DNA of 64,000 nucleotides, taken from assembly GCA_965202585.1 (NCBI GenBank), contig OZ241829.1:73098001-73162000 (forward strand), given 5' to 3'. A model generated the notes under the pieces. The model did no database searches. It was given only the letters and a program-made list of their open reading frames with translations, and had not been told where the DNA came from. How positions within the stretch are numbered: the first letter of the stretch is position 1; each line of letters begins with the position of its first letter. Made by a program: the position numbers and the translations under genes. Below, piece by piece: positions 1 through 64,000 of the stretch. This DNA comes from Thalia democratica. Its lineage: Eukaryota.

Positions 1-1703
1 TTTTATACAGAGTAAAAAACTTTGTATGCTTAAATATTACTTAGAAAAACAATTAGTTACAAAATATCTATAAAACTGACCAAGCTCATCCTAAAAGTAG
101 TCAAATATATAAACAAAATTAAAAAATCTACAGACTATTTCAGTTATATAAAAAATTCTTAAGTAGCTTTGAAGTTTTTGTAATAACCAAACAAGTTATG
201 TTCCAGAAAAACTTCATTCTTTTCAAAGTCATGCGAAATTTCAAAACTGAATTATTAATGACTTATGAAATATGTATGTGCCACATACTAAGGCTTATGT
301 CAGACTTTCAAATATTTGAATCTCTAGTTTAAAGTTAAAAATCATATAGCTACAATTTTTTACTTCTGACAGAAGTTATTCATGAGTTACAGTTAATGCT
401 TCACTAAAAAATATACTAAAATTTTACTTACCATAAATAAAAACAAATTAAGATTTTTAAGTGTTTACATTTTTCGTATGATTCACAATGTAGATAAAAG
501 TAACTTATTAGCTATATAAATATCTAAATAATTATAGAAGTATTGTATTCTTGAAACTATTTTTTATACATTATTTACTTAGTATATTGATGTAAAAATC
601 AAGTTATATAAAGCAAATTTAAATAAAACTGTTTTATAGTTAATATGTGTTCACTATACGTGTACATTGGTCGAATTCTAAGCTTTTTGAAATAGCTTTA
701 ATAATCACAACATATGCTCAAACCATTTCAATTTTAGCACATAGTAAGTTATTCAAAAAGTATATATGTCTAACACAAATGTATTAGATAAAGAATTCAA
801 AATTACTTTTACAAAAAACAAAGCATTGTAGGATTATAGAAAACAATACACTATTCATTGTACAACTGTTTTCTAGTTTTTCATTTTTTGTCTACGTGTC
901 TTTGTGACAAAAAAAAGTAGTATAACAAAATAACTCAAACATAACTTAAATGTCAAAACACTTTATTTTTAAATATAGGAGATAAATACAACTAAACTAA
1001 ATAATAACTTAAATATTTTGTAAAGTCTATATAAAATTAGTTTAAGAAAGCAGTATTTATGGCTTCAGAACAACTAAAAATAAAACATATTTCAAACTAT
1101 GTAAGTATATATAATACAAAAGCTTTTATAAAGTTTTATTAAAGTTTTAATAACTTTTAATGTTAAATATTACTCATGCTGGTAAATCCATTAAGCTGTT
1201 ATATTCTTTTACATATTTTAATAATAAAAAATTTTAAAACTAGTAATACAATACCTCTTTGTAGTACAAAATATTATTTTTGATAGTATATACTAGTATT
1301 TAAATGGTCAATTTAGGTCATGAATTTTTTAAATATAAATCATTACTATATAAAATCACTCGATAAAAAAGTAAACCAGAGTTTTACATAAAACAATTTT
1401 TTTTACAAAAAAAGAAATTGCTTCAAGCAGTAACAATAGTAAAGCTCGTTTTGTTTAGATTTTCAGTATTTATTTTAAGTAACACTATAAGTCTTTTAAT
1501 TTTAACGTTTAATAAGAAAACTTTATAAGTACATACGAGTATTTCCAAGCTTTAGTTTAATGTATATGACAAGGGCAATTAAAAGTTACGAACTGTATTA
1601 TTTATATAAAAAAATAACTTAAAAACTTTATAAATGGTTAGTACGATTAGTTAGTTTTAACTAGTAAGCAAACAATTTCTAACAACAATCTTATCGATTT
1701 CAG

Positions 1704-7700: not shown

Positions 7701-10700
7701 CACTCCAGTGGGTTCATGGCTTACGTTTCCACGTTGCACAAAAGGGTCTGTTGAATGAGCATCCAAGATAAGTTTTTGAAAAAACAATTAAAAAAAAAAG
7801 GATTTTAAAAATTATACTTGTAAGTGTCTAACCAAAAAAGTTATTAATGCATACCTGTCCAAATTCTGCTGCTGCTTGGTCCTGCTTGTCCAGTTGATCC
7901 TGCACTTGATCTTGCCCCAATGGCTTCATACCTTTGGTTTTGCACGCACGGGACAATACGACATTGGCAAGTTTGACCATTCTGAAAATTTATTTTAAAT
8001 TACTTTTTGTCTTAAAGCTTTTTGAAAAATAAATATTAGAATTTTCTTTTAGGTTTTTCTTATAAAAGTTTCAATAAAAAATAAGATAATTTTATATTAT
8101 GTTTTTTTTTTTCACAGAATTTAAAAAATTTTTAGATATCTAACAAAATATTAGATATCAAAGCAAATAATTAAGTGGTCATTGCTCATTTGACCACTCT
8201 GATAAAAATTATTAGTTGTGCTATACTATAAAAAAGAACTGGATAACTGTTCAAAAAAATACTACGTCGTGTTACTTTAATTAACCTGTCTGGAATCGAC
8301 GTCCTGCCACGCAAACGGGTTGCGCCCGTCGCCGTCACCAGCCATGCACTCGCACCCCGCCTCGATCGTGGTTAAATCGATGCAGCTGAAATCGCTTGTT
8401 CCGCCGCTCGAGAGAGTGAGCTCATCATCTTCCGCGCTCCATCCTTCCAAAATGGCATCCATGCGCGCGTACCTGTCGTCGTCATCAGACCTGCGCTCGC
8501 TCCCCGCCTCGATGGTAAACTCGAAATTGTTGCGTGTTCCTCCAAAAAAGCTGCTCCCGCCGCTCGAGAGAGTGAGCTCCTCCCATTCATCACCTTCTGC
8601 GCTTCCTCCTTCTGAAACGTGATTCACGGCTGCCGACCGCTCGTCGAGCTTGTTCATGTTTTTAGTCACAGTTTTGAGTGCGTCAACCATCTCTTGATTT
8701 TCAACTAAAGTAATCATTCTCTCTAGAGTCTGCCCGACCTCTTCTTCTGTATTTTCCTCCCTGACGTCACTCGCGGGATTCAGAATTTTGTCAAAGATTT
8801 CTTTGACGTTATTCATCATCCTAGCCATGACTTGCGGAAACCTTTGCAGTTTCGCCACTGCTTGTCGCACCTCTTGTTCTTCTGGATCTTCTTTCTCAAT
8901 GTCACCCGCGGTGTGCGAAGTCCTGTTATAGACTTCTTCCAAGTTTTTGACTAAATCAGCCACGGCTTGCGGCACCCTTTGCAAACTTGCCAATGCCTGC
9001 CGCGTCTCTTGTTCTCTTTCCGCTTCCTCGTCGTTCCTTCTTTCCGCACTTTCCTCCTCGCACACGAAGGAAAAGGAACGAAAGTCGCTGACGTCACTCG
9101 CCACTGAAGGCGGGGGCGCGTCTGAGCCGCTCGGTATCTCCACAAGCGCTGGCAAAGGTTCTATGACGTCATGATGGCTTTCTGCCAGCGCCGGTGCCAA
9201 CGCGACGTCATCGAGGAACCGCTGAATCAAGCTTGAGTCTTGCTCGGGCGCCCCGCCGTCCATCATCTCCGGGAAAAGAATGACGTCAGCACTGTCTTGA
9301 GTGAGCGGAGCTCTCTGCTTGCTGAGGTCAATGTGGTCAGACATCTTTTGCTGATACAAGTTAACAACTAACACTCTGAAATATTTTTATTCAGTAAAGA
9401 AACAGCTTACTACATGCATCTCTATGAGAAAATAATAAGTTTAAATAGATACAAAGAATTCTACTTTTATTGGTTTAATTTCTTTCTAAAACTTTTGCTA
9501 CAGCTTTTGTTAAAAGTATTTATTAGTACCTATACTGTATAATAAATATTATTTACCGCAGTCAACTAACATGTACTTAGAAATCAACTTTATAAAAGCA
9601 GCACTGCTAAAACCTAAAATCTAAAAGTGCAAACAGTAAGCTTCTAAAATGGCCATAATAAAAGTATACGGTTTCAGCTTAATCCACCTAAACTCAAACA
9701 AAATAGCATCAAAGTTAATTTAAAAATTTTGACGTAAACCATTTTCACAGGCCGGAAGTCCTACACCTTATGATAGGAAGTCTTCTGAGGCGGCAAACAG
9801 TAACTTCCAGAAATGGAGTGAGGTTAGTAACTTCATGTATTGTGAATATTTATAGACACAGATTATTAAGTAAAATGATAAAAAAGTTTAGGCATTGAGG
9901 ACCATGCAGATAAAGGGTGCAGAAAAAAATAAACTGCTCTAGATTCAGTTATTAGCAAAAATATAAATTATAAGAAGCAGTAGACTTTAATAAAAAATAC
10001 CTAGTTTAAAATGATCTGAAAATCTTTGAGCCTGCTTGCGATTAGTCATGTTTTAACAGTGTAAATTGTGGTTAACAAATGTAACGTTATGATTTAAATA
10101 GATAGTTTTTTCTTCCTTAATCTGCTTGAATTATTATAAGAAAAACAACTATTGCAAGCCAATTTTTACTTGTTATTTCAACGCTGTTTAGTTAAGTGAT
10201 ATTATTAGTAAATGATAAATTGTGATCTCAATAATTTTGAAACTGACTATCAAAATTATTGTTCCAATTCAACATTAACTTTAGGCTAAATTAAATCTTA
10301 TTTGAAATAAGCTTAACGTTAAACTTATTGGCATATTAAGAATTAAATACAAGTAGTTGCACAGTTTAATTTAAACACGCAAGTAAACGTCTAATAAATT
10401 TTGTCAGTTTAACAGCGGCAGTAAAATTACATTCAATTACATTAAAAGCTGCCTACGAAGCGGCGGAAATTTCAACGAGCACATCTCACTCTCACTTTTT
10501 CGCACTTAAAAACGCTCTCACTGATTCTCTCTACTTTCTCTCTTATCAACAGTGATGTTTTTGCGCGCGATCAACTGCGATTTTTGGGTTTTTTCCGCTG
10601 ACACCTGATGCAATATTTTGTAAATATTCATACGCCGATTCGCGCCTCTCGACTATATGTGTTTGAATTATATCCCAGATAAAAAAAAGCAAAGTTATAC

Positions 10701-13700
10701 GTGGAAACGCCAAACTCTTATGTTTAGTTTCGTACAATCTATAAAATACATATTTCCGAATTAGTATATGATTAATTTAAAAAGTGTAAAGACATTCTAG
10801 GGCACTAAAAGAAAAAAATAAAATCAAATACAAACTATGTTTACTGTATTAAGTTGTGTATGCTTATATAAAGAAAAAAATCGTAAATTATAAATTTTGA
10901 AATAAACCCAACTAAACTGCTTTATAAAATAATATATATAGTATGCAAGTATCAAATAGAAATTATGTTAAGCTAATAACTTTTAACTTGACTATTTCAA
11001 AAGTATATTAAACATAAATATATCTAAAAACAAAACAACCTGACAAACAAACGCTAAGAATTACACTTATTTTAAAACTAACTATGCTTTTATTAACACT
11101 ACTTTGGTGCATTAGTTCAGCAATACACAAATTAAATAAAGTTCTTATGCCTGCTAAAATAAGTAACAATGTGTTTACCTAAAAGCTACGTTTGATTTTT
11201 AAATTTATATGGTCTTTTACACTACACTAAAACTTATCATTGACAATAAGAATGAAACTATTTTAAGGTAAGACAGAATAAATGTCCTTTAAAACTATCA
11301 ACTATTAATTTAAATGAAACTCAAACTTTTAAAAGCACACCTAAAGTAGATAGTTTGATATTACTACTGTATATTTTAGTTGAACTTATGTTACCTATTA
11401 GATGTTTTACCCAGTATTTTAATTATGTAATTCATTAAAATTTTAATAAACGTGTTAATTAAAACTAAACACCATTAACTTTTATTAAAAAAATGTTTGA
11501 AAGAAAATATTATACTTATGCATATGGCAACTTATTTAGATACTAGATATATAAAGTATATATACTCACATACATACATGTTTATTATGTAAATATATAT
11601 ATATATATAAAGTGTAAATGCAATCAAATAAATGTTGAGGTAAATGTATAAAAAGTATAGTTAAAAACCTTAGCATTTGAGACGTAGCATTAAGTGGGCG
11701 GTCAAATAAGTTAAATACTGAGCACCAAATTAAATTGTGTAGACAGTTTTTAACCAGAAAAAAAAAACTCGCGAAAACACAATCACTGTTGGCTAGACAG
11801 CGTCGCAGATAAAACGAGAGAACTGAAAAACGAGAGAGAAGTGTTAAGAGTGTATATTGCAATGAAATCATTGGAGCGTGAATTACATCGCATGATCGCA
11901 TGATACTGTAAGCGCGAAAAACTTGATAATTTGCATAATTCTAGAAAAATCATTACCGCCTAAAACCGTTATTATTTCAACGTAAATCAAATTTTGGCGG
12001 AAAATTTCAGATAGTCAGATCTCAAAAATATAGCCACGTAAAATTTTATGATGCCGTAACTACAACTCAATTTTAATTGTTGTTCCAATCATTATACTTT
12101 TTTACTTAATAAAAGTATATCAATAAAACTGTTAAAAGTTTTTGCTTTTTGTAAAACTTATGAAACTACTATATTATTAATAAATGTATAACTATTATAA
12201 TTACTGCAATAATAATTATTTAAGCTGAAGATATTTAAGCATTTTATGAAATAGATTTAAAATTTTAAATGATATACAATTATGGTTGTAAAACAACAAT
12301 TTTTATAATTAGTTCATACCATTAACTTTATATAACTCTTATGCATTATAAGTTTATTCCTTTAAATATTTTTTCAAGCCACTATGTCAATAGATAAAAG
12401 TTAAGCAAGTTTCTTATCTACAAATAATGGTCTTGAACTAGCTTTACTCACCCAAATAAAGTTTGCAATTATCTGTACCTGTTGTTTGCTTTTATGAAAA
12501 GTTATGTGAATTATCATGTAATTAAAATATGTGGCTTATAAAAACTTTCAGTATTAGTGATTTTCCTTAAAATTTATAAAATGTATTAATGTTTATAAAG
12601 TCTTTTTTAAAGTTAAAAGATTTATCATTTAATTTATACATGTGGGCCACAAACATTTTCAATATTAGTTTTTTTTTTAACAATATCAACATATTATACA
12701 AATATTTAGCAAACTATACCTGCAATTATGTGAATTATAATGTAAGTCAAGCATGTGTAGGCCATTACACATGTTTAACTTTTACTAAAATAATATTACA
12801 AAATTAATATACATGAGACAAATACAAGAGTCAACAGCCTAAACACAGTATTAGAAAACCAAATGTTTTTAAATGATGCCTTTATGTTGAAAGATATGTT
12901 TTAAAAAAAAAAATCATTATAGTATAACATTGTATAATACATTATTATAACATGACTTAAAACACAGACAATCTAACAAAAGGTTCAAAAATAAACACAC
13001 AAAAGTAAATTTGTGCAGAATATTTATATTCTTATCCTAGTAAAAGTAATAATTTAACAAAAAACTATCTGTATTCTGTAATGTCTGGAATTTTAATATG
13101 TAAACTTAAATCTTTAATGGCAATAAATAATAATTACCCAACATTAAAATCTGTTCTATGTGAATCTAAAAATACTCCTATAATACATAGTAAACAAATA
13201 AAACAGCTTGAATAAACTGAGAACATCTAAAAACATAACAATTTTTTATGTTGAACAAAGTTTTTGCATTTATGGGAAGTTGTATAACATTTTGGTGTAT
13301 TCTAGAATTGAACGCTCATGACGCTACCGTGTGGCTTGTTGTTTGTAACAAGTTTTAATTTTAAAACAGTGCATTTTAAAATGCAAAAAACATTACTTAC
13401 ACACAAAAAAAAAAACCTTTATGTTTTTTTTGTAATTTTCATATTTGTTCGATATGAAAATTTTGTAATACTAAATCACAAATTTTAACAGTTAAAAGAA
13501 CAAAGATATTAACTGTATATATTTTAAAACGGTTCGGAAATAAAGTTATCTTTTGTGAATCATTTTAAAAATAACTAAAACACTTGAAAAAAATAAAAGT
13601 TAGAATGGCTAATTAAAGTCTCTTACCAAAGGTAAAAATTGAGAATAAATTATTTGTTAATTATAAACGTAGTCTGAATATAATTTATTCCCTGTTATTA

Positions 13701-43943: not shown

Positions 43944-45611
43944 TTAAAGTTTTTCAGCAAGTTTTTGGTATTTATCCTCAACTAAAGTTTTGTAACTATT
44001 TTCACAAATATCTTCAAACTCTTTTGACAACTTATTAAATCTTATTTCTATAAATTGAAAATCAGTGCCTATGTCGTCATATTTGAATATGTTCCAATAA
44101 TAGTTCACAAACATACTGTTAATATTCAACTTACTGTCAGTATATTCGTCGTTAAACTTTTTTAATTCATCGAGGAAAATATATGTTTTAGATGCATCAA
44201 CGTCAATATGTTCAAGCATAAATTTGACTTTTCTCAAAACAAACTCAACTAAGCCCCCACAATTTTCCAACATATTTTGTATACAGTCAAACTTATCCTT
44301 TAGAACTTTTTGTTTTCCGTCTGATAGTTTCATAGAGGTATATTTTAACTTAATTCCCGCCTCTTTCCAAATTTTTTCCTTTAGATTGCAAACAAGTTTA
44401 AAAAAATTTTGCATGTAGTTATTATACTTTTGGTTTGTCTCCTTTTCACGTATATTATTAAGTCGAGGGCAAATTTTACCATACAATTTTGCTGCTGATG
44501 TACCTTTTGCTAACTGATCGAGGTTTTTCTGAAGTTCATTTTCTTCAACTTTTATTAGTCTGAGAGTCTCCTCAAAAACATTTTGCTGCTGAAGTAAATC
44601 GTTACGAAGTTTTAGAACCTTTTTCTCAGAGTTTGGTCTCGTTTTCTTTTTACGTTTTTTCTCAACACTCTGTAACTTATTATTTGAAGGACAGGCTCCT
44701 AAAATTACTTCGTTATCAAAAGCTTCTACACTTTTGACCTTCGTTTGTTCTTGAGTTTCCTTATTATTATGGCTTGTACTTTTTGAAGTTGGTTCTGAAC
44801 AAACCCCTAAACTAACTTCTTGACTTTGATCTGTCAACTGGTCTGGATTTTTCTCATTAGTATTTGCCATGTCTGAATAATTTTTGGAGTTTGACCCTTT
44901 ACAGCTTGAATCAAATTTTGGAATTGATTTTTTACAGTTTAAATCAAATTTTGAGCTTGACTTTTCAGAGTTTGAGTCGATTGTTGAGGTTGACTTTCCA
45001 TAATTTGAGTCAATTTTAGAGGTTGACTTTTCATTATTTGAGTCAATTTTAGAGGTTGACTTCTCATTATTTGAGTCGATTTTTGAGGTTAAATTTTCAG
45101 AGTTTGAGTAGATTTTTGAGGTTGACTTTTCAAAATTTGAATCGATTTTTGAGATTGACTTATCATAATTTGAGTCGTTTTTTGAGGTTGGCTTTACACA
45201 GTGTGAATCGGTTTTCGAGATAGACTTATCACTGTTTGAACTGAGTTCACGGTTACTTACCGATATCTTTCGGATTACTTCCTTACTTACAATTGGAGCG
45301 GCATCACTTTTACTTTTATTTGTAAACAAACATAAACCGTTTTCAGATTTGCTGTTTTTGAATTCATGTTTAGCTAATTTATCTTTACTAAGTTTCGACA
45401 CAACTGTAGGTTTTGTAGAAAAGAGTTTTGAAATATTAATGCCTTTCTTCAAAACATTTTTATTTTGTACAAAATCATTCTCTAACAATCCGTTTAGTTT
45501 ATTTTACTTTTAAATGAAATACCGAAATGCACAAACTGTAGCAGATATACCAGCTACACCCAGAATAACTTTGCTTAAACTGACATCAAAACTTAATCTG
45601 AGTTTTATCAT
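43944..45611 (-). pseudogene. Anchored-family copy 1: ATG 45611, in-frame TAA at 45512-45510 and 45506-45504, then 514 open codons (pseudogene or non-canonically expressed)
   Basis: MIKLRLSFDVSLSKVILGVAGISATVCAFRYFI*K*NKLNGLLENDF... is colinear with copies 2 and 3. The downstream frame is uninterrupted to 43944. Confidence 0.7.
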
Positions 45612-46582
45612 TTTACCAGTTTTACAAAACACTCACCTGTAAGTAAAAGTATCAACAAATTGTTTTTAATAAAACTTAACAATAATAAACGATTAAGTTT
45701 TTCAAAACTTTTAGCCAAAAGAGGCAAGCTAGCTTCTATTTAGTTATAAATGTTTTTGTAATTCTTTTTTCTTATTATATGTTTTGATTTTTAGACACCA
45801 AATAAACAGATCTCAACTACTATAGAAGAAATAATGAATTTATTTCTTTAAGACTTTATTATAATACTTTTAAGACAAACCAAGTTTTGGTCAAAGACCT
45901 CGTCAGTGCTTAAATAAATGTTATTTAATATTTTCTTTTTTCTTATAAAATTTTAGTTGGAAACGTATTTAGCAAAACATAATACATTTTTTAAGTATAA
46001 AATACATTTAAAAATTTTATTAACTCATGCTTAATATAAAAGTTATTTTTCAAAGTATGTTTTTGTTTGTTTGGGTAACTAATTAAGGTATTTAAAGTAA
46101 AACTTATCATATTTTAATCAGCTTTGTTTTTGTAACTATCTGTAAAAAATACAAATTTTTAACTGTTTATACACAAAACCTATCAAAAATAAACTTAAGC
46201 TAAAAAGGGTTTTAAGAAAAAATCTAATAAACTATAAAATTAATAAGTTCTGAGTTAAAGTGTAAGTTAACTAAACTTAAATACCTAGTTTATTTTATTA
46301 CCGACCTAAAAGTAAACATTTTCATCAATCATGATTATAAGTGAAGTTTTTAAAAGAATGCACAATTTTATATGTACTTGAATTTAAATTAACAAAATAT
46401 ATACCTATTGGATAAAGTTAAACTTTTTTGCAGTTGTTTCAACGTTTTTTAGTTTTTTTGTTTAATACAAATTATAGATGTGATACAGTAATATAGCAGA
46501 AAGAATTAACATTATGCATTATAAATATTATTAATCTACAATAAACTATAGTTTTCGATTTTAATAAACACACATATAAAAA

Positions 46583-46626
46583 CTTGGCTGAAGACGCGTA
46601 TTAAACGCAGTAACAGCTGTCCAAAG
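46583..46626 (+). ncRNA. Degenerate minimal type I hammerhead ribozyme (Penelope-type)
   Basis: cttgg-CTGAAGA-cgcgt attaa acgca-G(T)AA-CAGCTG-TC-caaag: palindromic stem III and core A13 changed to U. (TA)12 lies 33 nt downstream. Confidence 0.6.
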
Positions 46627-46658
46627 AAAACCTTTACTTTTTGTATTTTAGTTTTAAA

Positions 46659-46682
46659 TATATATATATATATATATATATA
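46659..46682. repeat. (TA)12 microsatellite
   Basis: Direct reading. Confidence 0.9.
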
Positions 46683-46759
46683 AACAAACTATACAGTAAT
46701 CTTCCTTTATTCTACCAACATATGTTTCTGTGTGTCAACGAATCAACACACTTCAACTG

Positions 46760-47480
46760 GATTGTTAATAGGAAAGATAATTAAATCAAAATTTACTGAC
46801 AGTAACCTTAAATTAACTTCCTTTGCGAAAATTTCTATACTTTCTTTCAATGGTTCTGGACTACCTTCATTGATATTTTCATTGTGTGCATTACACTTCC
46901 AACAATTTGACTTTCAACAGTTTAAGTCGATTTTTGAGATTATTATTTCACATTTTGAGTCGATTTAGAGATTGACTTTTCACACTCTGAGTCGATCTTA
47001 AGATTGACTTTTCACTCTCTAAGTCGATTTTGAGATTGACTTTTCACACTCTGAGTTGATTTTTGTGGTTTGCCTCATCTATGTCTAAATAAGTTTTAAA
47101 GGTTGACTTTTCAAAATAAGGTCCAATTTTAAATACTTACCCTTCACAATTTGATATGGGCTTACTCTTGTTAACTGATGCCTTTTTGAGGACTTCTTCA
47201 TTTTCAATTGAACTGGCGTCTTTACTTTTGTAAGCTAGTATTCTAAATAGTTATCAGTTTTTTTGTTCTTTAGCTCGTTTTTGGCTGATATCTCTCCATT
47301 GATTTTGGGTTCAACGTTAGGTTTTGTAGAAAAAAAACTCGTAGTTGATTGTCTTCCTCTAAATTTGTTTCATTTTGTGTAAAATAAACATTTGAAAAGC
47401 TTTTTAGTTTATATTACTTTGAAGTGAAACAGTGAAATACACAAACTGTTGCAGATATACCAGCTACACTAAATTTTAAT
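46760..47480 (-). pseudogene. Decayed, 3'-truncated copy of the anchored family
   Basis: Retains gtagctggtatatctgcaacagtttgt (VAGISATVC), several 33-nt linker repeats and an NEGSPE-like segment. It has stops and frameshifts, no ATG context and no C-terminal domain. Confidence 0.8.
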
Positions 47481-48369
47481 GTAATATTTGTGATTAAAAC
47501 TAACACAATTTTTAAGACTAGTAATTATTTCTTAGTTTTTTCTATTTCATTATGTAAACATTAATTTTATTTAGTTTAAATGTTTAAAAGATTTAGTATT
47601 TAATGATAGTTTTCAGTTTTGCTATATTAATAATTCTTAGACCTGTGTTTAATTTATTAATAATCAGACTAGCCTTTACTAGTTTGAAGTTTTTTGAGAG
47701 ATTCAGGCTGTTTTATTTTTATTTCAGTAATATTTATAATGATAATTAATATTAAATCCATAAAGTTTTCAAATAGGAAATAGATTATTAAGACTTATGG
47801 TATGTTAGTCAAAGTAAAACTTAGTTTAATGAGTATGTAAAAGTCTTCAGTGTATAGTTAAAAGTCATTTAAATTAATTAAGTAAATATTAATAAGCCTT
47901 GAACAAAACTAAAACAATGTTCTATTTCGTATAACTAAAATTAAAACCTAAACATTATTAAAATGTGACTATAAATAAAACTGAGGCCAGCGAAGATTTT
48001 GAAACTTTAAATTTTGCCTACGAGTTACAATTACCTGCTGACCCCTGAGTTTACTTTTGTTTAAGTTTTTTGTTTTATAATACAATTCGTTTTGATTTTT
48101 TTTTTACTCATTTAATTTTTTTAAGTAGGTAGAGTGAATGCCTTAGTTAGAAAAAATAAAAATCAATATGATTCAGTTAATAGATGTAGAACAACTGTAT
48201 TTAAAAAAGTTACATGAAATTAAGATTCTTGATGTTTTAGATAGTTCTATTTAATCTCCACATAAGAAATTAAAACTAAATATTTTTTTTAAATTGATAC
48301 ATAAATACCAGACTTAACTAAAAACAAGACCAACAAAAACAAAAACAAATTTTCAAAACAAAATGTTTT

Positions 48370-50106
48370 CTAAACATTGACTTCTAATTTTTCTTTAAAC
48401 CTTTGATACTCATCTTCAACTAAAGTTTCATAACTTGTTCCATGAATACAGTAAAACTTGCGAAACAAACAACTAAAATTATCCCGCATAGCAAATAAAT
48501 CTTCCCATATCACATCATTCTCGAATTTATCTAAAAATTCGCTGAACATTAAATTAGTTTCCTTTTGATATTTAATATGTTCATTATACAAATCATCAGA
48601 AACTTCGAAGAAAAGTTTTGTTTTAGATTCATCTACTTCCAAATATTCAAGCATAAATCTAATTCTTCTTAAAACAATATCAACTAAGCCCCCACATTTT
48701 TCTAACACATTTTGTATACATTCAAACTTTTCCTTGAGATTCTTCTGTTTTTTGTTTGATAAGTTAGTAGTGGCATATATTGGTTTTTTTCCCGCTTCTT
48801 TCAATACTTTTTCATTTAAATCGCAAAGATCCAGAAAATAAGCTTTCATATTTTCATTGTAATTTTTATCGGTCTTCTTCTCACGGATTTTAATTTGACG
48901 TTTGTATGCTTTATCATACAAAGAAATTGCTGATGTCCCTTTTTTCAGCTGGTCAAGGTTTAGGTAAAGTTCATTTTCTTCAACTTTTATTAATTTAAGA
49001 GTCTCCTCAAAAACAATTTGCTGCTGAAGTAGATCTTTACGAAGTTTACTAATTTTGTTTTTAGACATTTTTTGATTGTTTTTTTTAGATTTCTCCTTAA
49101 CAACTTGCAAACCGTCATTTGTAGTACTTGCATTACCTTTTAATCTAGCATCTTTGCCAAGAACTTTTATATTTTCATCTTTCAAATGGTCTGGACTTTT
49201 TTTATTTACAGGCTTCTTTTTAATATGTACTTTATACTTTACCTTAACATTTTGCAAATCGTCATTAGAACTACTTGTAGTACTTGTATCAGCTTCTGAA
49301 CTAATTTTCATGTCAATAACCTTAGTTCTTTCATCATTCAATTGTTCTGGACTACCTTCATTTACAGGCTCCTTTTCAATACCTACTTTAGATTTTTCCT
49401 CAACATTTTGCAAATCGTCAATAGAAGTACTTATACCAGCTTCTTTACTATTTTCTTTATCAAGAACCTCGATCCTTTCATCGTTCAATTGGTTTGGACT
49501 TCCTTTATTCAGAAACTCCTTTTTATATTCTACTTTAGATTTTTTCTCAACAGTTTGTAAACCGTCATTAGAAGTTGTTTGATTAGCTCTAATACCAGCT
49601 CTCTCATCAAGAGCCTTTATGCTTTTATCTTTTAATTGCTCTGAACTTACTTCAGTAATATTTGCTTTGCATGATTCATTTTCAGAAATTGGTCCTTTAC
49701 AGTTTAAATCATATTTTGAGATTGATTTTTCAAAGTTTAAATTATATTCACCTTTACAATCTGATGTCTTTCTAAAGATTTCGTTACTAGGACTGATATA
49801 ACCTTTATTTCTATTTGAAAACTTATCTTTGTCATTTTCAGGTTTGTTGTTTTTGAAGTCATCTGTAGCTGATTTGTTTTTACTACGTTTTGACACAATA
49901 GTTGGTTTTGCAGAAACTAGGTTTGACACTTTACTCTCTTTCTCTGAGTTTGTTTTATTTTGTACAACATCGTTATTTAAAAAGCCTTTTAGCTTGCTTT
50001 TCTTTAAAAGGAAATACTGAAATGCACAAACTGTAACAGATATACCAGCTACACCAAGAACAATATTGGTAAAGCTGACATCAAAACAAAATTTGAGTTT
50101 TATCAT
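48370..50106 (-). CDS. Anchored-family copy 2, 578 aa, single coding exon: N-terminal hydrophobic anchor, Lys-rich 49-aa repeats, helical C-terminal domain; function unknown
   Basis: Long intact ORF in about 70% AT DNA. Hydrophobic IVLGVAGISVTVCAFQYFLL is followed by KKSKLK. Clear paralogy to 56299-58170 and 43944-45611. Confidence 0.88.
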   Translation of the reverse strand: MIKLKFCFDVSFTNIVLGVAGISVTVCAFQYFLLKKSKLKGFLNNDVVQNKTNSEKESKVSNLVSAKPTIVSKRSKNKSATDDFKNNKPENDKDKFSNRNKGYISPSNEIFRKTSDCKGEYNLNFEKSISKYDLNCKGPISENESCKANITEVSSEQLKDKSIKALDERAGIRANQTTSNDGLQTVEKKSKVEYKKEFLNKGSPNQLNDERIEVLDKENSKEAGISTSIDDLQNVEEKSKVGIEKEPVNEGSPEQLNDERTKVIDMKISSEADTSTTSSSNDDLQNVKVKYKVHIKKKPVNKKSPDHLKDENIKVLGKDARLKGNASTTNDGLQVVKEKSKKNNQKMSKNKISKLRKDLLQQQIVFEETLKLIKVEENELYLNLDQLKKGTSAISLYDKAYKRQIKIREKKTDKNYNENMKAYFLDLCDLNEKVLKEAGKKPIYATTNLSNKKQKNLKEKFECIQNVLEKCGGLVDIVLRRIRFMLEYLEVDESKTKLFFEVSDDLYNEHIKYQKETNLMFSEFLDKFENDVIWEDLFAMRDNFSCLFRKFYCIHGTSYETLVEDEYQRFKEKLEVNV

Positions 50107-50765
50107 TATAAAAGTTTTATAAACTACTCACCTGTAACATGAAGCTTTAAAGTAATTTATACCTTTACAATTTCTTGTCTAACGTTAAAAAAGCTACTGA
50201 CACATCAAAAAAAAATCTTTTAATAGATAAATTATTAAGATTTTGAAGCTTACCTAACTACGAAAAAATTCTGAAGAACTCAAACTTTAACAAACATTTT
50301 GATGTATGTTTTGTACACTTTTATAAGTAATTTAAACAAGTAGTCTGCTAATTGAAATTTTATAAATAAAACACATAAATACGTTTAGTTTTAAATTGTT
50401 TATTAAAACAAAAATTAACTTTTAAAATCCTTATCTTTATGTTTAATATATTTTTTTTACATAAATTAGTTTTAATATTTTTAGCTCACTTAGCCTTTTT
50501 TGAGAGAAATCAACTATACTTTTTTTTTTAAATATTTTCTAATAGAATTCCGTATGGTACTTTAAAACAAAATTTTCAAGTTGTGCTAGTTTACATATGT
50601 ATATTTCTTTAGAACTTTTTTAGAAGTTAGTTTTAAATAACTATTACATATACCATTAAACATAATAACAAGAAGTTTTTTACAAGTATTGTTTCATAAA
50701 AATTAAACAGTTTTAATTGTTTTTAACTGAGAGTAATTTTTAAAACTATAATTTTTTAGTAGACA

Positions 50766-50780
50766 GTTGTCCATGGTTAC
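50766..50780 (-). promoter_or_regulatory. RFX X-box-like element upstream of copy 2
   Basis: Minus strand GTAACC-ATG-GACAAC, one mismatch to GTNRCC(N0-3)RGYAAC, 660 bp upstream of the ATG; positionally conserved in copy 3. Confidence 0.4.
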
Positions 50781-53700
50781 AAAGCAAATAAAGTATTGAC
50801 AATTCGATATATTAACAATTTCTAAAAGGGCGCACATATCAAAAGTAATTTGAATTTAATTAAAAAAGAAGACCTGGGTATATATTACAATATTGTGACA
50901 GTAAAAAGAATTCTTTTGTTTTATTAGCTTCTATTAAGAAAAAAAACAAAGTCTCAAAAAGTCTCTAGTATAAAAAACATAAATGCTTTTTTTAGGTCCG
51001 ATTATTAAATACTCGATAGTAAAAGAATGCTTAATAAATTTAGTCACAGTAGTTTTTAAGCGACAATTAAGACTCATAATAGTTTCAAATATAGAAATTT
51101 ACATTGTCATGTACCCGTTTTTCACAGAAAAATATAAAACGAAAATATATTTAGTTTTTATAATATTAGTATTTTCTTGTGTACATAAAATCTTAAGGAA
51201 AAAAAAAACTGCAAAAAAGTATGATTTCATTACCATCAGAACTTTTTAAGATAAGTCTAAAGAATGGTTGGCATACATTGGTAGTCTTGTTTTTCAATAT
51301 TTTAGGGTAATGTTATAACCTAAGTTAACAATGAGTATTATACATTTGTCTGACTGGTTGTGAAACTCAACATAATAGTTAAAAAAGTGTTAAACTTCAT
51401 TTGAAAATAATTTTAAAGAAACTTAATATATATAAAGTTTGTGATTTTTAAAAGAAAAACTTTTTTTCTAAAAAATTGAAAAAATTTAGAGTTTTGTTAT
51501 TAAATAATAAATATCATACAACGTTAAAGAATCTTTTATTTTATTTTTGATCAAAACTTCACTGAAATGGTAAGTAGTAGTATGTTTTGTGCGATTTTGG
51601 TGTAAATTTTTGGCGGCTATTTTGTAGTCGAAAACGAAAAATAAAATTTACCGCAGTTTTAGTTTTAGTCACAGTTACAGCTTTAGTTTTTTCAGCATCT
51701 AGTTACAGTTGTAGTTTTACTTATAACTATAAAATATCATATAATAAAAGAGTACAACATATCGTGAGTTTACTAGATATACGTTTAAATTTAGTTGAGT
51801 AAGTTATTTATTAAAGCTCTTCGTTATGAAACCATTTAGTGCATAAAAAAACTAGACACTTGTTTGAAAAACTATTAAAAATATATTGTTTAAAGAAAAG
51901 AAAAAAAAAATTAATTACCAGTACAAAAGATTAGTTTTAGTATTTTAGTGGCCCTAGACAGAAACTTCACCATTTAATTATAACAATTTTTAGTATACTA
52001 TCTTATTTTTCTAATTGATGCATTTTCTTTTGATCAGACATTTATTTTAATAATTTAAATACTAATATATAAATACCTAAAAGCTTTTAAAGATGTTTTT
52101 AAAAACTTTTTTATTTAACAATTCACTAAACTAACACTTTGTTTTGTTCATTAAAAACGCTCAATACCTTAATACTCAATATATTATTTTAAAGCTTAAC
52201 AAACTTTATTCAGTTCAAGGTTTCATCGGACCGTTTGCCAAGTTGTATAAATAATGTGCATTTACCCACAAAGTTTTAGCTTTAGCCACGAGTTTATGTT
52301 TTGTTCACACATAGATGATGATATTTCAAGAATACAAAAAGGCTTCTGACAAAACGTTTTATTTCATATATCGTAAAGTTATGTAGAGTTTTAACTGCTG
52401 TACATTTTTTTTAAGTTTCATATATTAATTTAAACTAAATTGCAGAACCTTTCTGTGATTCTATTGTAAACTGTCTTAGAGTTCTAAAGTTTATTAAAAA
52501 CGACTTTAAATATCTTTATTTTACAAAAATCAAATAAACTTATACAATATCAGTTTTGTTTAAAAATATGGAATTATTTAAACTAATCTATATACAACAA
52601 AAAACACCATAAAAACTCAAGCAGTTTTAGTTTTAATTGAAGTTATAGTTAAACATACTGATCGCTATTTGAATGATACATCTTTTACGTTTTAAATAAC
52701 AGTTCAGTATTATGCGTATATCTAACTAGTTGTAACATTTGATATAACAATTTGTACAACGAAAAAGTTTCATTGAAATGTTATTAATAGACACATAGTT
52801 TACAAAGTTTTGTGAACTTGAGTCGGGAATTATTCTGCTAATAGCTTTACACTTTTAAAATACTAACATATAAAACTGGTAAATTTTACAAAATGAAAAG
52901 CAAAAATTTCTTTAATGTTTAAGTAAAATTTAATAATTCGAATAGTTAATATAGTATATTTTGCTTGTGTTACTTTAATTTTAGTTTATGACTAACACAA
53001 ACTTCAAGCTTTTATAATTATATTTACCCAGTTTTCAGTACTTACACAAAAAACTTTATAAGGTACACATAAGCAAAAATATAGCAGGGCTTAGTTTTTG
53101 GCTGAAAGCAACTTTTTCCTTGAACTGAACTTTAACTTGATAAGACAAGTGAGTTTAAAATTAGTTGACATAAAAACTTAAATTATACTTAAAAATCAAA
53201 AATAAATAAACTTTTAAAATTAAAAATAATCAGTTGAACTTGACTGGAATTCGACGGTTACAATTGACATTAAATTGTAAATTTAACTTGTTTAACATGT
53301 TTGTTCAATAAAATAACCGACAACAGTAAGTCGGCAGCAGTAAAATCGGCACACGCCTTCATTTTCGTGTCGGAGGCCACTATAAAAACTGTCATCAAAA
53401 TAAAAACTTCACATTTTATTTTTCAAACCTTACTTTTTTAAAAATAAGTCAATACATTTAAAAATATTAATATAACCCATTTTAAGAACTTTTATTTATC
53501 AAAAAAGCTGTAGTTGAATGACTAATTATAAAAAATGTAGAATTTAATTTTTTTTGTCAAATAGTAGAATGAAGTTTTTTATCTCCATATAAACCACTGT
53601 TTATAGTCTATAGATTTTGAATATTTATCTACTCGCTAAAAATTTTAATAAATAAATGGTTTTTGACATAGTTTTCAATAATTTATAATTTCAAATTTTA

Positions 53701-54294
53701 TAAAGCAAAAGATTGATTGCATTGTCCTAAATTAAACATTAATGCATATTTGTTTTGAAAACAGAAAACTGAAACCCAGTTAGTAAAAATACAATTCTTT
53801 TATAAATGTTTTCGATTATGATTTATTTTTTTTGTATGTTTAGTTTGCAGAGATTTTTTATACGGTTATTAGAGAAACTGTTAAATTGCTATTGACTATT
53901 AGATTTAAAAATTGACTATTAGATTTATCGCCGAACCTTTATTGTAGTGTAGTGCTTCTAACTGATTACTAGGAAACTATGGTTAGAAGTAAAATAAATT
54001 CATTTAAAAAGTATAAAAATCAGTTTAAATACTTTACACCTAGAGATTATAGCATAAAAGTGTATAGTACACAATTTCTACATATTTTTCATTTGTGTCG
54101 ATCAGCTAAGTAAGTTGTTTGGTGTGCAAATTTTACAAAATATGTAATGAGCTTATAACGTTGTTTTACTTAACTAATTTCATTTTATATATTTTATTTA
54201 TTGAGGTTTTTATAAACTTTTGCTTATAACTTAGATGACATGTAATAACATACTGAAGATATAGTACAGTACTATAAAAGTGTATTAGTTATAA

Positions 54295-54849
54295 CAGTGC
54301 TTCTGAACCTTTTTTTTAATGGCGGAACCCTTTTTCAAAAATTAACTTTTTCGCGGAACTTCATAATTTAATTTTACATAAAATGTTTAAATGTTATATT
54401 TTAAATCAAGCTAATAGACGTTTTTTTTAAATTTTTTTACAGCACTTGAAATAATATAATGTACCAAAAATAAGTTTCTGATAAAGATTTTTTATTTAAT
54501 TTTTCTTTGTAAACATTTAGAATTTGTTTTGATTGCTCCTACATTGTTTGCTTTAGTGATAATACCAGTATTTTCATGACTTCACAAAAAGTATAAATTC
54601 AAAAATTTTTCAAAAATTTGCGCAACCAGACACCTATTATAATGAATACCTATTAAAAGTTCTACCGCTAGATACACACTAAGCAGATCAATGAATGCTA
54701 TAATTATATATGTTTTCCAATTTATGTGTTCCTTTTTTTTTGGAGTTGTATGATTTATGTTTTTCTATTTTTAAAATTTATTTTTTAAATTTTGAAAGGC
54801 TTTGTGGAACCCCTGAGAAGCGTTGCGGAACCCCATTTCAGAAGCAATG
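54295..54849. mobile_element. hAT MITE, 555 bp
   Basis: TIRs CAGTGCTTCTGAA / TTCAGAAGCAATG (12/13). 8-bp TSD agttataa / aattataa (7/8). Subterminal (c/t)ggaac(c) motifs at both ends. Confidence 0.8.
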
Positions 54850-55380
54850 AATTATAAGATGAAAATATTAAGAAATATTGTTGATTGTACAATAGGCAAC
54901 AAAAATAGTCATTTACATGAAATTAAATTTTTTCGAATTTTATTTGTTTATTTAGTCATGAATATCACTGTGCCAAACATTAAAAGTTAAAAATTTAAAA
55001 ATTTCAACAATATATGAATTAGAAACGAGTTTTTTTTTATTTAAAAAATATATTTTTACATGCTGAGATTGTCTTGAATATCAATACTTTTTAAACTTGT
55101 AATAAATCTAAAATTTTTGTGGTTTTATTATATTTTACAATCTAAAAGAAATCACATTTTAATTTAATAAAAAATTTTTTTTTTTTTAAATATCCATAAT
55201 ATTTTAAGTTTCAGTTTTTTGTTACAGTACTTAATGAAATAAAATCAGAAAAAATTAATATAACACAGTATTTATTGTTCAAATCCAAACTAAACTTTCA
55301 AGTTTTTATAATGAAAAAACTGTTTACAAAAACCAAACTCAATGAAAACAAAACTAAACAAAAAAACCAAAACTAAAACA

Positions 55381-55586
55381 TTATTAAACATCAACTTCTT
55401 CAGCCTCAATATGCTTTTGATATTCATTTGCAACTGTTGCAACTTTTTAGAAATGCAATTAAGTTCACTGATAAAACATGCAACAGTATTTTCTATTTAA
55501 TTAACAAGGTTTTTACAAAAGGATATTGGTTTGAACTTTTATGACTATAAAACATTTCCAAACATTTCGCCTGACGAGCTTCTGAC
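55381..55586 (-). pseudogene. Frameshifted fragment of the family's extreme C-terminus
   Basis: ...VANEYQKHIEAEEVDV* resembles copy 2 ...VEDEYQRFKEKLEVNV*, followed by a similar A/C-rich (plus strand) 3' flank. The upstream part is out of frame. Confidence 0.55.
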
Positions 55587-56298
55587 CTAAATAAAACTTA
55601 TGTTGTTTAATAAATGTCGTTGTGAAAATAACCTTTAAGTTTACAACGGTATAGATTACAATTTTAAGTAAGTGGCTACAAGTTAAAAATTAAGAGATAA
55701 GTTTAAAAATAACTAACTTATTTTTTAGTAGAATTGAGCTAAGTGCATTAAGTTACTAAAACAATCATTTAAGATTTTAAATTAATTAACTAAATAGTAG
55801 TTTAAAATCATATAGTTCTTTTCAATTTTTTTTTGATAATTACGTTAAGAATTTTTATCATGACTTACCAAGTAAAACTTTTTATTTTAAAAACGTTATT
55901 AAAAATTCAATTATACACTTAAAAGTTGTTGTTAAAATATTTTTATGATAACTTTCTTTAACGAATATGTATATATTTATTAGAAAATTCTTAGTCTAGT
56001 AATTTATTCTTAAAGGTAATTGCTATAATTTAAAACTTGGTATAAATTTAGCAAAATAAAATTAAGGTATAAGCTAACAATCCAGTTTATTTCACTAAAC
56101 TCGTTTAAATTTTTTAAACTCGAATTCTCAAAACTTAAGAAACACATTAAGGCTATTTACATATCTATATTTATTGTTTATTTAACTACTAAAAAAGGAA
56201 AAGAATGTTTTTTTTTAAACAAAAATCAAGTAAATAAAAAAAACACAGCTAAAACAAAGATAAATCACAAACCAAAAACGTTTTTAAGTCAGTATATT

Positions 56299-58170
56299 CT
56301 AACCTCTATTCTTATATTTTTGATACTCATCTACAACTAAAGTCTTATAGCTATTATCCCAAATACAGATAAACTTGTCAAATAAACAATAAAAACTATC
56401 CTTTATATCATCTAAATTTTTCCATATAGCTTCTCTGCCAAAATTATTTTCATAACCATCATACATTAAGTGAAATTTTTTCGACCATTCTTCATATTCA
56501 TTATGTAAATTTAGCGAAACTTCAAAGAAAAGTTTTGATTTAGATTTATCAGCTTCTAAATATTCAAGCATAAATTTAATTTCTCTCAAAACAATCTCAA
56601 CTATGCGCCCAAATATGTTTAAAACATTTTGCATACAATCAAACTTTTCCTTGAGATTTTTCTGTTTTTTGTTTGATAACTGAGTAGTGGAATATTTTGG
56701 TTTATTTCCCGCTTCTTTCCATACTTTCTCCTTTAAATCGCAAACATCTGTAAAAAATGCTTTCATATTTTCATTGTAATTTTGTTTGGTTTTCTTTTCT
56801 CGTATATTAATCTGACGATTGCAAACTTTATTATACAAAGAAAGTGCTGATGTCCCTTTTTTCATCTTACTGAGGTTTTGGTCGAGTTCTTTTTCTTCAA
56901 TTTTAATTAATCTAAGAGTCTCCTCAAAAAAACGTTGCTGTTGAAGTAAATCGTTACGAAGTTTTTCTATTTTATTTTCATATTTTTTTCTTATGTTCTT
57001 CTTAGGTTTCACCTTTACAGTTTGCAAACCGTCATTTGTATTACTGGCATTACCTTTTAATCTAGCATCTTTGCCAAGAACGTTTATATTTTTATCTATC
57101 AAATGGTCTTGAATTTTTTTATTTACAGGCTTCTTTTTAGTATTTACTTTATATTTTACCTTAACATTTTGATAATCGTCATTAGAAGTACTTGTAGTAA
57201 TTGTATCAGTTTCTGAACTAACTTTTTTGTCAAGAACTTTTACATTTTCATCTTTTAATTGTACTAAACTACCTTCATTTACAGGCTCCTTTTTAATATC
57301 TACTTTAGATTTTTCCGCAACATTTTGCAAATCGTCAATAGAGGTACTTGTATCGTCTTCCAAACTATTTTCCGCACAAAAAACCTCAATTCGTTCAACG
57401 TTCAACTGGTCTGGACTTCCTTTATTCACAGGCTCCTTTTCAATACCTACTTTAGATTTTTCCTCAACATTTTGCAAATCGTCAATAAAAGTACTTATAC
57501 CAGCTTCTTTACTATTTTCTTTATCACGAACCTCGATTCTTTCATCGTTTAAATAGATTTGACATCCTTTATTCACAAACTTCTTTCTATAATCTAATTT
57601 ATACTTTTCCTCAACAGTTTGTAAACCGTTATTAGAAGTTATTACATTAGCTCTAATACCAGCTATCTCATCAAGAGTCTTAATGCTTTCATCTGTTAAT
57701 TGGTCTGAACGTACTTCAGTAATATTTGCCTTGCATGATTCATTTTCAGAAATTGGTCCGACACAGTTTAAATCAGAACTTGAGATAGATTTTTCAAAGT
57801 TTGCATTATATTTACCTTTACAATCTGATGTCTTTCTAAAAACTACGTTAATAGGAGTGATAAAACCTTTACTTTTATTTGAAAACTTATCTAAGTCATT
57901 TTCAGGTTTGTTGCTTTTGAAGTCATCTGTAGCTGATTTGTTTTTACTGAGTTTTGAGTTAATATTTTGTTTTGCTGAAACTAGGTTTGACACTTTTTTC
58001 TTTTTATCAGAGTCTGTTTTATTTCGTACAACATCATTTTTTAAAGAGCCTTGTAGATTGCTCTTGTTTAAAATGAAATACTGCAATGCACAAACTGTAG
58101 CAGATATACCAGCTACACCCAGAATAGTATTGGTAAAGCTGACATCAAAACAAAATTTAAGTTTTATCAT
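56299..58170 (-). CDS. Anchored-family copy 3, 623 aa, single coding exon; function unknown
   Basis: Intact ORF colinear with copy 2, with one extra 49-aa repeat. About 1 kb of upstream flank (to about 59199) is also homologous to the copy 2 flank (to about 51122). Confidence 0.88.
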   Translation of the reverse strand: MIKLKFCFDVSFTNTILGVAGISATVCALQYFILNKSNLQGSLKNDVVRNKTDSDKKKKVSNLVSAKQNINSKLSKNKSATDDFKSNKPENDLDKFSNKSKGFITPINVVFRKTSDCKGKYNANFEKSISSSDLNCVGPISENESCKANITEVRSDQLTDESIKTLDEIAGIRANVITSNNGLQTVEEKYKLDYRKKFVNKGCQIYLNDERIEVRDKENSKEAGISTFIDDLQNVEEKSKVGIEKEPVNKGSPDQLNVERIEVFCAENSLEDDTSTSIDDLQNVAEKSKVDIKKEPVNEGSLVQLKDENVKVLDKKVSSETDTITTSTSNDDYQNVKVKYKVNTKKKPVNKKIQDHLIDKNINVLGKDARLKGNASNTNDGLQTVKVKPKKNIRKKYENKIEKLRNDLLQQQRFFEETLRLIKIEEKELDQNLSKMKKGTSALSLYNKVCNRQINIREKKTKQNYNENMKAFFTDVCDLKEKVWKEAGNKPKYSTTQLSNKKQKNLKEKFDCMQNVLNIFGRIVEIVLREIKFMLEYLEADKSKSKLFFEVSLNLHNEYEEWSKKFHLMYDGYENNFGREAIWKNLDDIKDSFYCLFDKFICIWDNSYKTLVVDEYQKYKNRG

Positions 58171-58845
58171 TATACAAGTTTTACTAACTACTAACCTGTA
58201 ACACGAAGCTTTAAAGTAATTTATACTTTTACAATTTCCTGTCTAACGTTAAAAAAGCTACTTACATCAAAAAAAACTTTTGATATATAAATTATTAAGA
58301 TTTTGAAGCTTACCCAAATACGAAAAAACTCTGAAGAACTCATACTTTGAAAAATAATTAGACTTGCGTATTATACACTTTTATGAGTAACTTATACTTG
58401 TAGTCTACTGATTAAAACTTTATAAAAAAACACATACATACCTTAAGGGTTAATTAATTTATTAAAACAAAAAAAAAAATTTAAACCCTTATCTTTATGT
58501 TTAAAATATATTTTTATATGAATTAGTTTTAATTTTTTAGCGTACTTAGTCTTTTTTGAGAGAGATCAATCAAATATACTTTTTGTGTTTATATACTTTC
58601 TAACAAAATTCTACATGGTAATTTAGAAAACATTTAGAGTTTGTGCTAGTTTACGTTGGAATATATCTTTAGAAATGACTTTTTTTATTTTTTTTAATAA
58701 CTGTTACATGTACCTTTAAACATAAAAGTAAGAAGTTTTTTACAAGTATTTTTAAGTATTTAAGATATTTATAAGATAAAAAGTAATCAATCTAAATTGT
58801 TTTTGTACTAGTCTACATTTTTAAACTAAAATACTTTAGAGAACA

Positions 58846-62590: not shown

Positions 62591-64000
62591 TCTTTAGACC
62601 AAATTTTTTCTTTTGTTTTTTAGAGCGCTTTTATTTATCGCTCAAATAACAATATAAACCCGTTCAATGAAACTGCAATAATAATTTTTTATAAAAAATT
62701 TTAGTTATAAAGTACACGAGTACCAACATCGGCACCCTTTCGATTTTTTTCTAAAATCTTAAAAAACAAATAAGAATGTTGTAAATGTAAATGTTTCAAA
62801 GTATAAAAACTTGCTGAGTATTGAATCTTTTTAAACAATACAGTGCTTTAAACTAAATGTAAAATTATTTTAGAACAACTTCTAATACTAGTAAATGATA
62901 ATATTTTAATTATTAATTTTAAAATTATGAAAAGAACATTATGAAGATTTTAAATACTAGTGAGTAATAAATAACAAGAATAAGACAACAGTTTATGTTG
63001 ATATTTTAACATAACTGACAATGTTATATAGATTAAATGCTTAACAAAGTGTATTTTGAAACGTTGTTAATCAAATGTTAAAATTACCCTATATATAAGA
63101 TTAAATTAACTAAAAAGATAAATTTTGATCACCGATTTTAAGAATGTAAAATTTTTTTTTTTTAATTTTTACAAATAAAAATATAAAGATACTTATTTCC
63201 AAATAAACCACTGTCGGTAGACGAAGATTTTTTTTCTATTAGCTGAAGTTATTTATAATAAAAGATTTCTACTATAGTTTTCAATATTTTATAGTTTCAA
63301 TATTTTGAAAGCAAAACATAGTTTTTACTTGATTTAAAAATTCACTCCTTTTTGTTTTGACAAGACAAGTAGAAACAATTTAAGTTAAAATTACTGAAAT
63401 CAAATTTTTAAACAAAATCTTTTTATCTTAATTTTTTTTTTAATTTGCAGCATTTTTTAATATAGATATAAGCGAAACTGTTAAATTTCTTCTTTCTTAA
63501 TTTACCAAACGTTTATTTAAAGTAAACTTACAGATTACCAAATTAATTATGATTATTAATTTAATATTACTTAATAAGTTAATATTAAGTTATTTCATTT
63601 CGAGACTTAAGCATATAACACAAACTATTCTATTATAAATTTTATTCTAGTTTTATTCCAGTATTTTTGATGTAAAAGATCAAATTTCTATTTAATTTAA
63701 ATTCAAGTTTACCCCTTATTTAAAAATATTAATACTTTTAGTTAAGAAATAATATATTAAAACGTTTTCTTTTATACACTATATGAAGTCAGATCTTGTG
63801 CATTGATTTATTAGTTTATACTAAAATATTTTTTCATGATACACGAAAACTAAAATCAATTAACAAACAAAACTAAACGGTATGAACGAAAATAAACTAA
63901 ACTAACATAGAACGCAACGGTAAAACATAGTTACTTTTTTGATCTTCAACTAAATTTTTGTAGCTATTAGCACATATGTAATACAACTTTTCAAACAAGT

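Follow-up and report, generated by a model that had tools for sequence, protein, structure and literature searches.

A 64,000-nucleotide window of the 802-Mb Thalia democratica genome (GenBank assembly GCA_965202585.1, contig OZ241829.1) carries several members of what, by all sequence criteria applied here, is a lineage-specific protein-coding superfamily, seen only in this genome and in ocean metagenomes. The window, positions 1 to 64000, corresponds to G000:C5:73098001-73162000 and has a GC (guanine plus cytosine) content of 25%. Three long members (copies A, B, and C) and one fragment lie between positions 43944 and 58170 on the minus strand, and a further gene crosses the window end. Each gene is one uninterrupted open reading frame (ORF) in three parts: a short leader, a repeat-built spacer, and a predicted helical-bundle head. 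The leader is the most constrained module of the protein. In our preferred reading, to which we give a probability of about 0.5, it would be a signal-anchor that stays uncleaved and leaves everything downstream of it, spacer and head, in the cytosol, where the heads would serve as membrane-tethered adaptors. We regard this as a well-documented family and not as a demonstrated recognition or conflict system.

The three parts were delimited by aligning 19 members whose long ORFs begin at the leader methionine, 17 of them complete and 2 truncated at the C terminus. The leader is 33 to 36 residues long, starts with M-I-K-[LV], and contains the run L-G-V-A-G-I-S-A-T followed by C-A-[FL]-Q-Y-F. Its hydrophobic run of 18 to 20 residues closes in the conserved aromatic Q-Y-F and is followed by K/N-rich residues, which in most members contribute a charge of +1 to +3 over the first five or so residues; the N-terminal flank is likewise positive. 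In all 19 members the best 19-residue Kyte-Doolittle mean was 1.4 to 2.2 and fell within residues 4 to 34, usually 15 to 33, and a comparable second segment was found solely in L032 (1.66), the other 18 members having only the leader one. Directly before the head there is a basic cluster. The head itself is about 225 amino acids (aa) long and was modeled from a 15-sequence alignment as seven helices with a mean predicted local distance difference test score (pLDDT) of 87.8 and a predicted template modeling score (pTM) of 0.86.

The spacer measured 199 to 362 aa in five members, with wider variation across the family. It contains 16 to 18% Lys, together with Ser, Asn, Asp, and Glu (14 to 16% acidic residues), and its isoelectric point (pI) is about 9.0 to 9.5. 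The repeats from which it is built are 147 bp (49 aa) long in copies B and C and 33 bp (11 aa) long in copy A, the neighboring fragment, and other subfamilies, in variable copy number. In the full-length AlphaFold model of copy B, residues 1 to 341 had pLDDT values below 50 except for a helix at residues 13 to 38. The sequence-only reading that preceded this analysis had described Lys-rich proteins with a moderately hydrophobic N-terminal segment of about 20 residues, a repeat linker, and a helical domain marked by several motifs. That plan, with the motifs, was recovered in the three long minus-strand paralogous ORFs, the segment being a single one at residues 15 to 34 and Lys making up 13 to 18% of spacer and head. 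The single coding exon that had been proposed for each gene is compatible with the uninterrupted ORFs.

Three lines of evidence argue that these are real coding genes: ORFs of 450 to 690 codons stay open in DNA of 25% GC, the heads show coding constraint, and independent relatives occur in marine metagenomes. With Nei-Gojobori counts, the ratio of nonsynonymous to synonymous divergence (dN/dS) for most pairs was 0.3 to 0.6 in the head, in each of three subfamilies, and 0.5 to 0.9 in the spacer. It might be argued that the ORFs are not expressed genes but non-functional repeated DNA that travelled with recent segmental duplications or a mobile element, as roughly three in four loci are broken and high-copy repeats lie between the copies. 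However, head dN/dS stays well below 1 across old paralog pairs with dS of 0.3 to 1.2, long ORFs persist in AT-rich sequence, both ORF and leader are retained by divergent relatives from other samples, and the copies occur only in local arrays and match no transposase, reverse transcriptase, or virus, which leaves this explanation very improbable.

The same rates bear on how the family evolves. Conflict-type evolution had been suggested from the sequence at first sight, and the head and spacer ratios above do not support this suggestion. In pooled 25-codon windows along the head, no value was convincingly above 1, although two small windows of low divergence reached or exceeded 1, and in the last third of the subfamily 1 head dN/dS was 0.5 to 0.95. 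These values fit relaxed purifying selection, in which coding constraint is evident and an arms race is not supported. In the leader, dS within the genome was only 0.1 to 0.25, even between subfamilies whose heads differ by a dS of more than 1. Compared with the metagenome relative P0038, the leader gave a proportion of synonymous differences (pS) of 0.26 to 0.43 and a ratio of nonsynonymous to synonymous proportions (pN/pS) of about 0.27 to 0.7. Taken together, the leader pN/pS and the low dS within the genome suggest constraint at the protein level across samples, combined with gene conversion or constraint at the nucleotide level within the genome.

The relatives were found by searches of very large protein collections. 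A word-indexed search of 5.8 billion proteins returned one match, an exhaustive profile search of 1.84 billion representatives returned 44, and a search with the superfamily profile returned 9. All of those checked (20, plus the 9 from the superfamily profile) were unnamed marine-metagenome proteins in ENA, and none came from an annotated proteome. Of five contigs traced, three (P0001, P0003, and P0038) come from the marine metagenome project PRJEB4352 and two from other ENA assemblies. Three metagenome proteins were nested inside the genome subfamilies in the tree and two fell outside, and the relatives reach down to about 26% head identity. The divergent relative P0038 is 24 to 28% identical to the genome copies in the head and 56 to 78% identical in the leader. 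A leader-only search of the 5.8-billion-protein set gave no match at E up to 0.01. Among the publications listed in literature searches on salp and tunicate genomes, no title or abstract mentions such a family.

No known family was recognized, in agreement with the sequence-only reading. Pfam (21 members and relatives) and NCBIfam (4) gave sub-threshold and inconsistent matches only, and a profile search of PDB sequences found no relative, its best match being a designed bundle at an E value of 0.0012, with syntaxin and SipD at about 1. The predicted head fold was compared with the PDB, AFDB clusters, Swiss-Prot models, the ESM Atlas, and BFVD, as well as by exhaustive VIA-align, and nothing rose above the noise level of helical bundles. 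With Foldseek, E was at least 0.02 and the template modeling score (TM) at most 0.46 in every library; the best shape match in the ESM Atlas had a TM by query of 0.43, a search of the ESM Atlas by features gave no usable match, and the viral models of BFVD gave none at E of 0.001 or below. PhoU-like proteins and designed up-down bundles resemble the head in being all-helical and of similar size (VIA-align Z of 9.5 for the PhoU-like fold and 10.1 for the designed bundle). However, the PhoU-like fold had Foldseek E values of at least 0.03, TM of at most 0.40, and VIA-align Z of 8 to 9.5, and both this Z and that of the designed bundle are under the helical-bundle noise level of about 13. The resemblance is one of a common helix arrangement and is not evidence of kinship. 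We also looked for a match of the C-terminal domain to a housekeeping or transposon family, and there was none. An origin of the family from a transposon or virus was not supported, as no transposase, reverse transcriptase, capsid, or viral fold was matched and the head copies are concentrated in a single 1.2-Mb array, with few outside it.

The family is much larger than the window. Head-domain matches in the genome numbered 65 by protein search and 86 by profile search, and merging by eye gave about 66 loci. Sixty-one of these lie in C5:72.43-73.59 Mb, three on the unplaced contig C1297, and one on C7, and a pseudogene is found at C5:66.92 Mb. About a quarter of the loci are intact, with 17 verified as open all the way from leader Met to head end; in about ten others the head is open behind a broken 5' part, and the remainder are fragments. 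The tree contains three subfamilies, with several near-identical copies 100 to 650 kb apart. The birth-and-death evolution that had been proposed for the window was thus confirmed by the genome-wide copy search and proved far more extensive than claimed.

On C5, the strand of the head matches depends on their position, being plus without exception to the left of 73.04 Mb and minus without exception to the right of 73.14 Mb. The two arms are separated by about 100 kb devoid of family members, and positions 1 to 43,000 of the window fall within that segment. Copy C and the gene at the window end, which lie 7.6 kb apart, are mirrored by a gene pair at 72.996/73.004 Mb. Together with the strand switch, the mirrored pair indicates that the array in the window is the inverted arm of a segmental duplication. 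Paralogs are also mosaics of one another: copies B and C are closest to each other in the upstream region, leader, and spacer (dS of 0.14), whereas in the head copy C is closest to L005 (dS of 0.25, versus 0.46 between B and C). The sequence comparisons show genes that have evidently multiplied by tandem and segmental duplication (one of the latter inverted), that exchange segments, and that often decay.

The leader reaches beyond the genes that share the head. With the first 75 residues as query, at least 138 matches were found in the genome (150 of 218 candidates were scored), and about 65 of them were the head loci. ORF clusters headed by the leader occur on at least seven further chromosome-scale contigs. 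The other leader arrays were located on C1 at 39.09-39.19 Mb; on C2 at 4.36-4.40, 14.9-15.0, and 65.1-65.3 Mb; on C4 at 4.97-5.0 and 100.21 Mb; on C5 at 21.5-22.0 and 77.2-79.1 Mb; on C9 at 43.77-44.18 Mb; and on several unplaced contigs. In each of twenty loci from these arrays (L056-L075), the shared leader opens an ORF of 250 to 775 aa that continues through low-complexity sequence into a C-terminal part of helical appearance; ORF lengths of 400 to 790 aa were likewise recorded behind this leader in the other clusters. In profile-profile comparisons with the head, group g4 showed clear homology (99.8%, E of 1.6e-28), homology of group g1 was likely (83%, E of 9e-6) and that of group g3 doubtful (49%, E of 1.7e-4), and none was detected for group g2 (about 0%, E of 0.33). 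With one leader common to heads whose similarity is partial (g1 and g4) or not detectable (g2), it is the leader that defines the superfamily, and the heads have diverged beyond, or nearly beyond, recognition. Across all superfamily groups, Met1, Lys3, and Gly21 of the leader are invariant, Ile2, Asp9, Lys14, Gly18, and Ser23 are nearly so, and [V/I/T]-[C/G]-A is conserved at residues 26 to 28.

If expressed, a superfamily of this size, counting at least 138 copies of the leader and about 50 long ORFs that are open, would rank among the largest orphan ones in a pelagic tunicate. Its modular design, in which constraint falls on the putative membrane-targeting leader and the folded head diverges, offers a testable case of a lineage building a new protein repertoire from scratch, and the 35-residue leader is a defined unit for reading out a targeting rule.

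In the signal-anchor interpretation that we favor, the leader would insert into an internal membrane, of the endoplasmic reticulum (ER) or mitochondrial outer-membrane type, leaving the short N terminus outside the cytosol and the spacer and head inside it. Gly18, Gly21, and Ser23 form a conserved small-residue face of the helix, by which all members would attach to a shared membrane partner or to one another. The spacer, variable in length, would extend heads diverged for different ligands, so that one type of anchor would carry many kinds of head. Such an anchor with a cytosolic head is suggested by the 18- to 20-residue run ending in aromatics and basic residues, by the lack of a disulfide framework, and by the intracellular-type composition. 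Docking to a common partner is suggested by the conserved small-residue face and by the leader being the most constrained part. The most far-reaching form of this idea, in which the near-invariant leader docks one common membrane partner and the 100+ heads are a diversified intracellular recognition repertoire on spacers of varied reach, seems improbable to us. If true, salps and their relatives would have a variable-receptor system of their own, anchored to an organelle and kept varied by duplication, recombination between paralogs, and loss.

Several observations weigh against an uncleaved anchor with a cytosolic head. The strongly hydrophobic core covers only about 14 residues (15 to 28), the conserved [V/I/T]-[C/G]-A fits the -3/-1 rule of signal peptidase, which makes a cleaved signal peptide a serious rival, and positive charges flank both sides of the segment, so that the topology call is weak. 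In addition, the low leader dS may reflect gene conversion or a nucleotide-level element and not protein function. The family could instead be secreted, with a near-constant cleavable signal peptide and a diversifying mature protein that yields extracellular products of the tunic, mucus net, blood, or gamete surface. Such a signal peptide would have the expected n-h-c layout, with a basic n-region, the 14-residue core, and Ala at the last of the three motif positions; the leader is far better conserved than the remainder, with low synonymous divergence, and the family is large, tandem, fast-turning-over, and lineage-specific. However, spacer and head show no conserved or even-numbered Cys framework: the best Cys column reaches only 73% conservation, and whether a member has an odd or an even number of Cys residues is random. 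Sequons of the type N-x-S/T were not enriched in the eight members tested, their numbers being near the shuffled expectation, within about 2 standard deviations. Just past the putative cleavage site, the conserved Q-Y-F and the basic cluster resemble the end of a membrane helix, and the composition of the long spacer (Lys-rich, disordered) and of the helical head (rich in Lys and Glu) looks intracellular. Secretion is the main rival and a possibility to be taken seriously, though we hold it to be rather unlikely.

The near-constant signal peptide with a diversifying mature part is known from the conotoxin-type and amphibian skin-peptide superfamilies. The genes described here resemble the conotoxin type in having a leader far more conserved than the remainder, with low synonymous divergence, and in forming large, fast-turning-over arrays, but they differ in lacking a Cys framework and in encoding products of 450 to 700 aa with a disordered spacer, and cleavage of their leader is putative.

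A more specific proposal of the sequence-only reading was that the leader is a mitochondrial outer-membrane signal-anchor of the Tom20/Tom70 type and that the heads are conflict-driven recognition or effector modules. Moderate hydrophobicity and a positive charge on the C-terminal side are the published criteria for such anchors, and both are present here, with Kyte-Doolittle means of 1.4 to 2.2 and a net positive charge within about five residues after the segment in most members. The short N-terminal segment followed by basic residues is indeed the feature shared with Tom20 and Tom70. However, it also fits ER anchors and signal peptides, the orphan family has no tetratricopeptide repeat (TPR) or other receptor domain and no homology in Pfam, NCBIfam, or PDB sequences, and dN/dS remains below 1 outside the two small low-divergence windows, so we judge the combined proposal unlikely. 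A mitochondrial destination is one possible option among several for such an anchor, with nothing that points to it specifically, and a role in germline, gametes, or innate immunity, which the sequence-only reading had also put forward, is speculative.

Among known membrane proteins, p180 (RRBP1) and kinectin share the overall plan, in that they have an N-terminal membrane anchor, adjoining Lys-rich tandem repeats, and a cytosolic helical C-terminal part. There was no sequence or Pfam match, including to the ribosome-receptor region, and the orphan family is multi-copy and lineage-specific. Whereas the p180 repeats are strongly basic decapeptides, the units found here are 49 or 11 aa long and nearly balanced in charge, with a pI of about 9, and the C-terminal part of p180 and kinectin is a long coiled coil instead of a compact helical bundle of about 225 aa.

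Within the window, all family members lie on the minus strand. Copy B (48370-50106) is intact from ATG to stop and encodes 578 aa, with the leader in codons 1 to 36 (50106-49999), a spacer predicted to be disordered (49998-49060) with 147-bp repeats at 49279-49654, the helical head at 49059-48373, and the stop at 48372-48370. Copy C (56299-58170) is likewise intact, encodes 623 aa, has its 147-bp spacer repeats at 57268-57639, and has three near-identical twins elsewhere in the cluster; the similarity between B and C continues about 580 bp upstream of the C gene, to 58753. Copy A (43944-45611) starts with an ATG at 45611-45609 and the usual leader. Two in-frame stops, codon 34 (45512-45510) and codon 36 (45506-45504), break the frame and are followed by 514 open codons. 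It aligns in a single frame from 45611 to 43947 in a protein-versus-DNA comparison, with 33-bp (11-aa) spacer repeats at 44924-45240 and the head at 43947-44633. The decayed member is a 5' fragment at about 46800-47608 that has a degraded upstream block, a degraded leader lacking the ATG, many stops, 32-bp (11-aa) repeats at 46907-47063, and no head. Thus, of the five members that had been counted in the span, the two intact, one interrupted, and one decayed copies were recovered, all on the minus strand, whereas a second decayed copy was not: protein and nucleotide searches of 50106-56299 gave chance-level matches only. The tally in the span is four, and the fifth member (L036) lies beyond it. 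This is an intact gene of another subfamily, 517 aa, whose 3' end occupies 63927-64000 on the minus strand and which continues across the window end to about G000:C5:73163450.

The second stop of copy A (AAG-TAA) is common to the neighboring fragment (45504-45512 and 47380-47400, minus strand), which indicates that this stop is older than their duplication. The copy A branch nevertheless had a dN/dS of 0.37 to 0.52, resembling the intact copies. Either most of the divergence of copy A would be older than the stop, or its leaderless downstream ORF may still be used.

The genes are preceded by a conserved upstream block. Its consensus is a TATA-like element, about 24 to 30 nucleotides (nt), TTACAG|GT[G/T]AGTAG, about 25 nt, and the ATG, and it was found upstream of members of all subfamilies and of a metagenome relative. 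On the minus strand, the block lies at 50107-50161 for copy B, 58171-58225 for copy C, and 45612-45642 for copy A. In copy B, TATAAAT is found at 50161-50155 and TTACAG|GTGAGTAG at 50137-50124, 25 nt before the ATG. The block is a candidate core promoter (TATA plus initiator, with a short 5' untranslated region), an assignment suggested by the spacing, which fits a short 5' untranslated region; alternatively, it is a candidate cis- or trans-splice acceptor.

On the plus strand, antisense ORFs of 109 to 172 codons were found at 49076-49582 and 57227-57556, overlapping the 147-bp repeats of copies B and C, and at 57683-58201, overlapping the 5' part of copy C. These are most simply by-products of repeat structure and composition and not genes. 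In three genomic DNA runs, the summed contig depth at 45701-46100 and 46501-46900 was 40,000 to 540,000, compared with roughly 50 to 4,000 in other bins, and very high-copy interspersed repeats therefore lie between family members at these two places. Outside the family, the window ORFs of at least 100 aa comprise, apart from antisense ORFs inside repeats, three in the 7- to 12-kb region (7072-7407, 8277-9374, and 11566-11901). The second of these, for which Pfam matches were sub-threshold only, is a 365-codon ORF on the minus strand in a GC-richer patch (about 41% GC), and an antisense ORF at 8320-8622 is nested in it.

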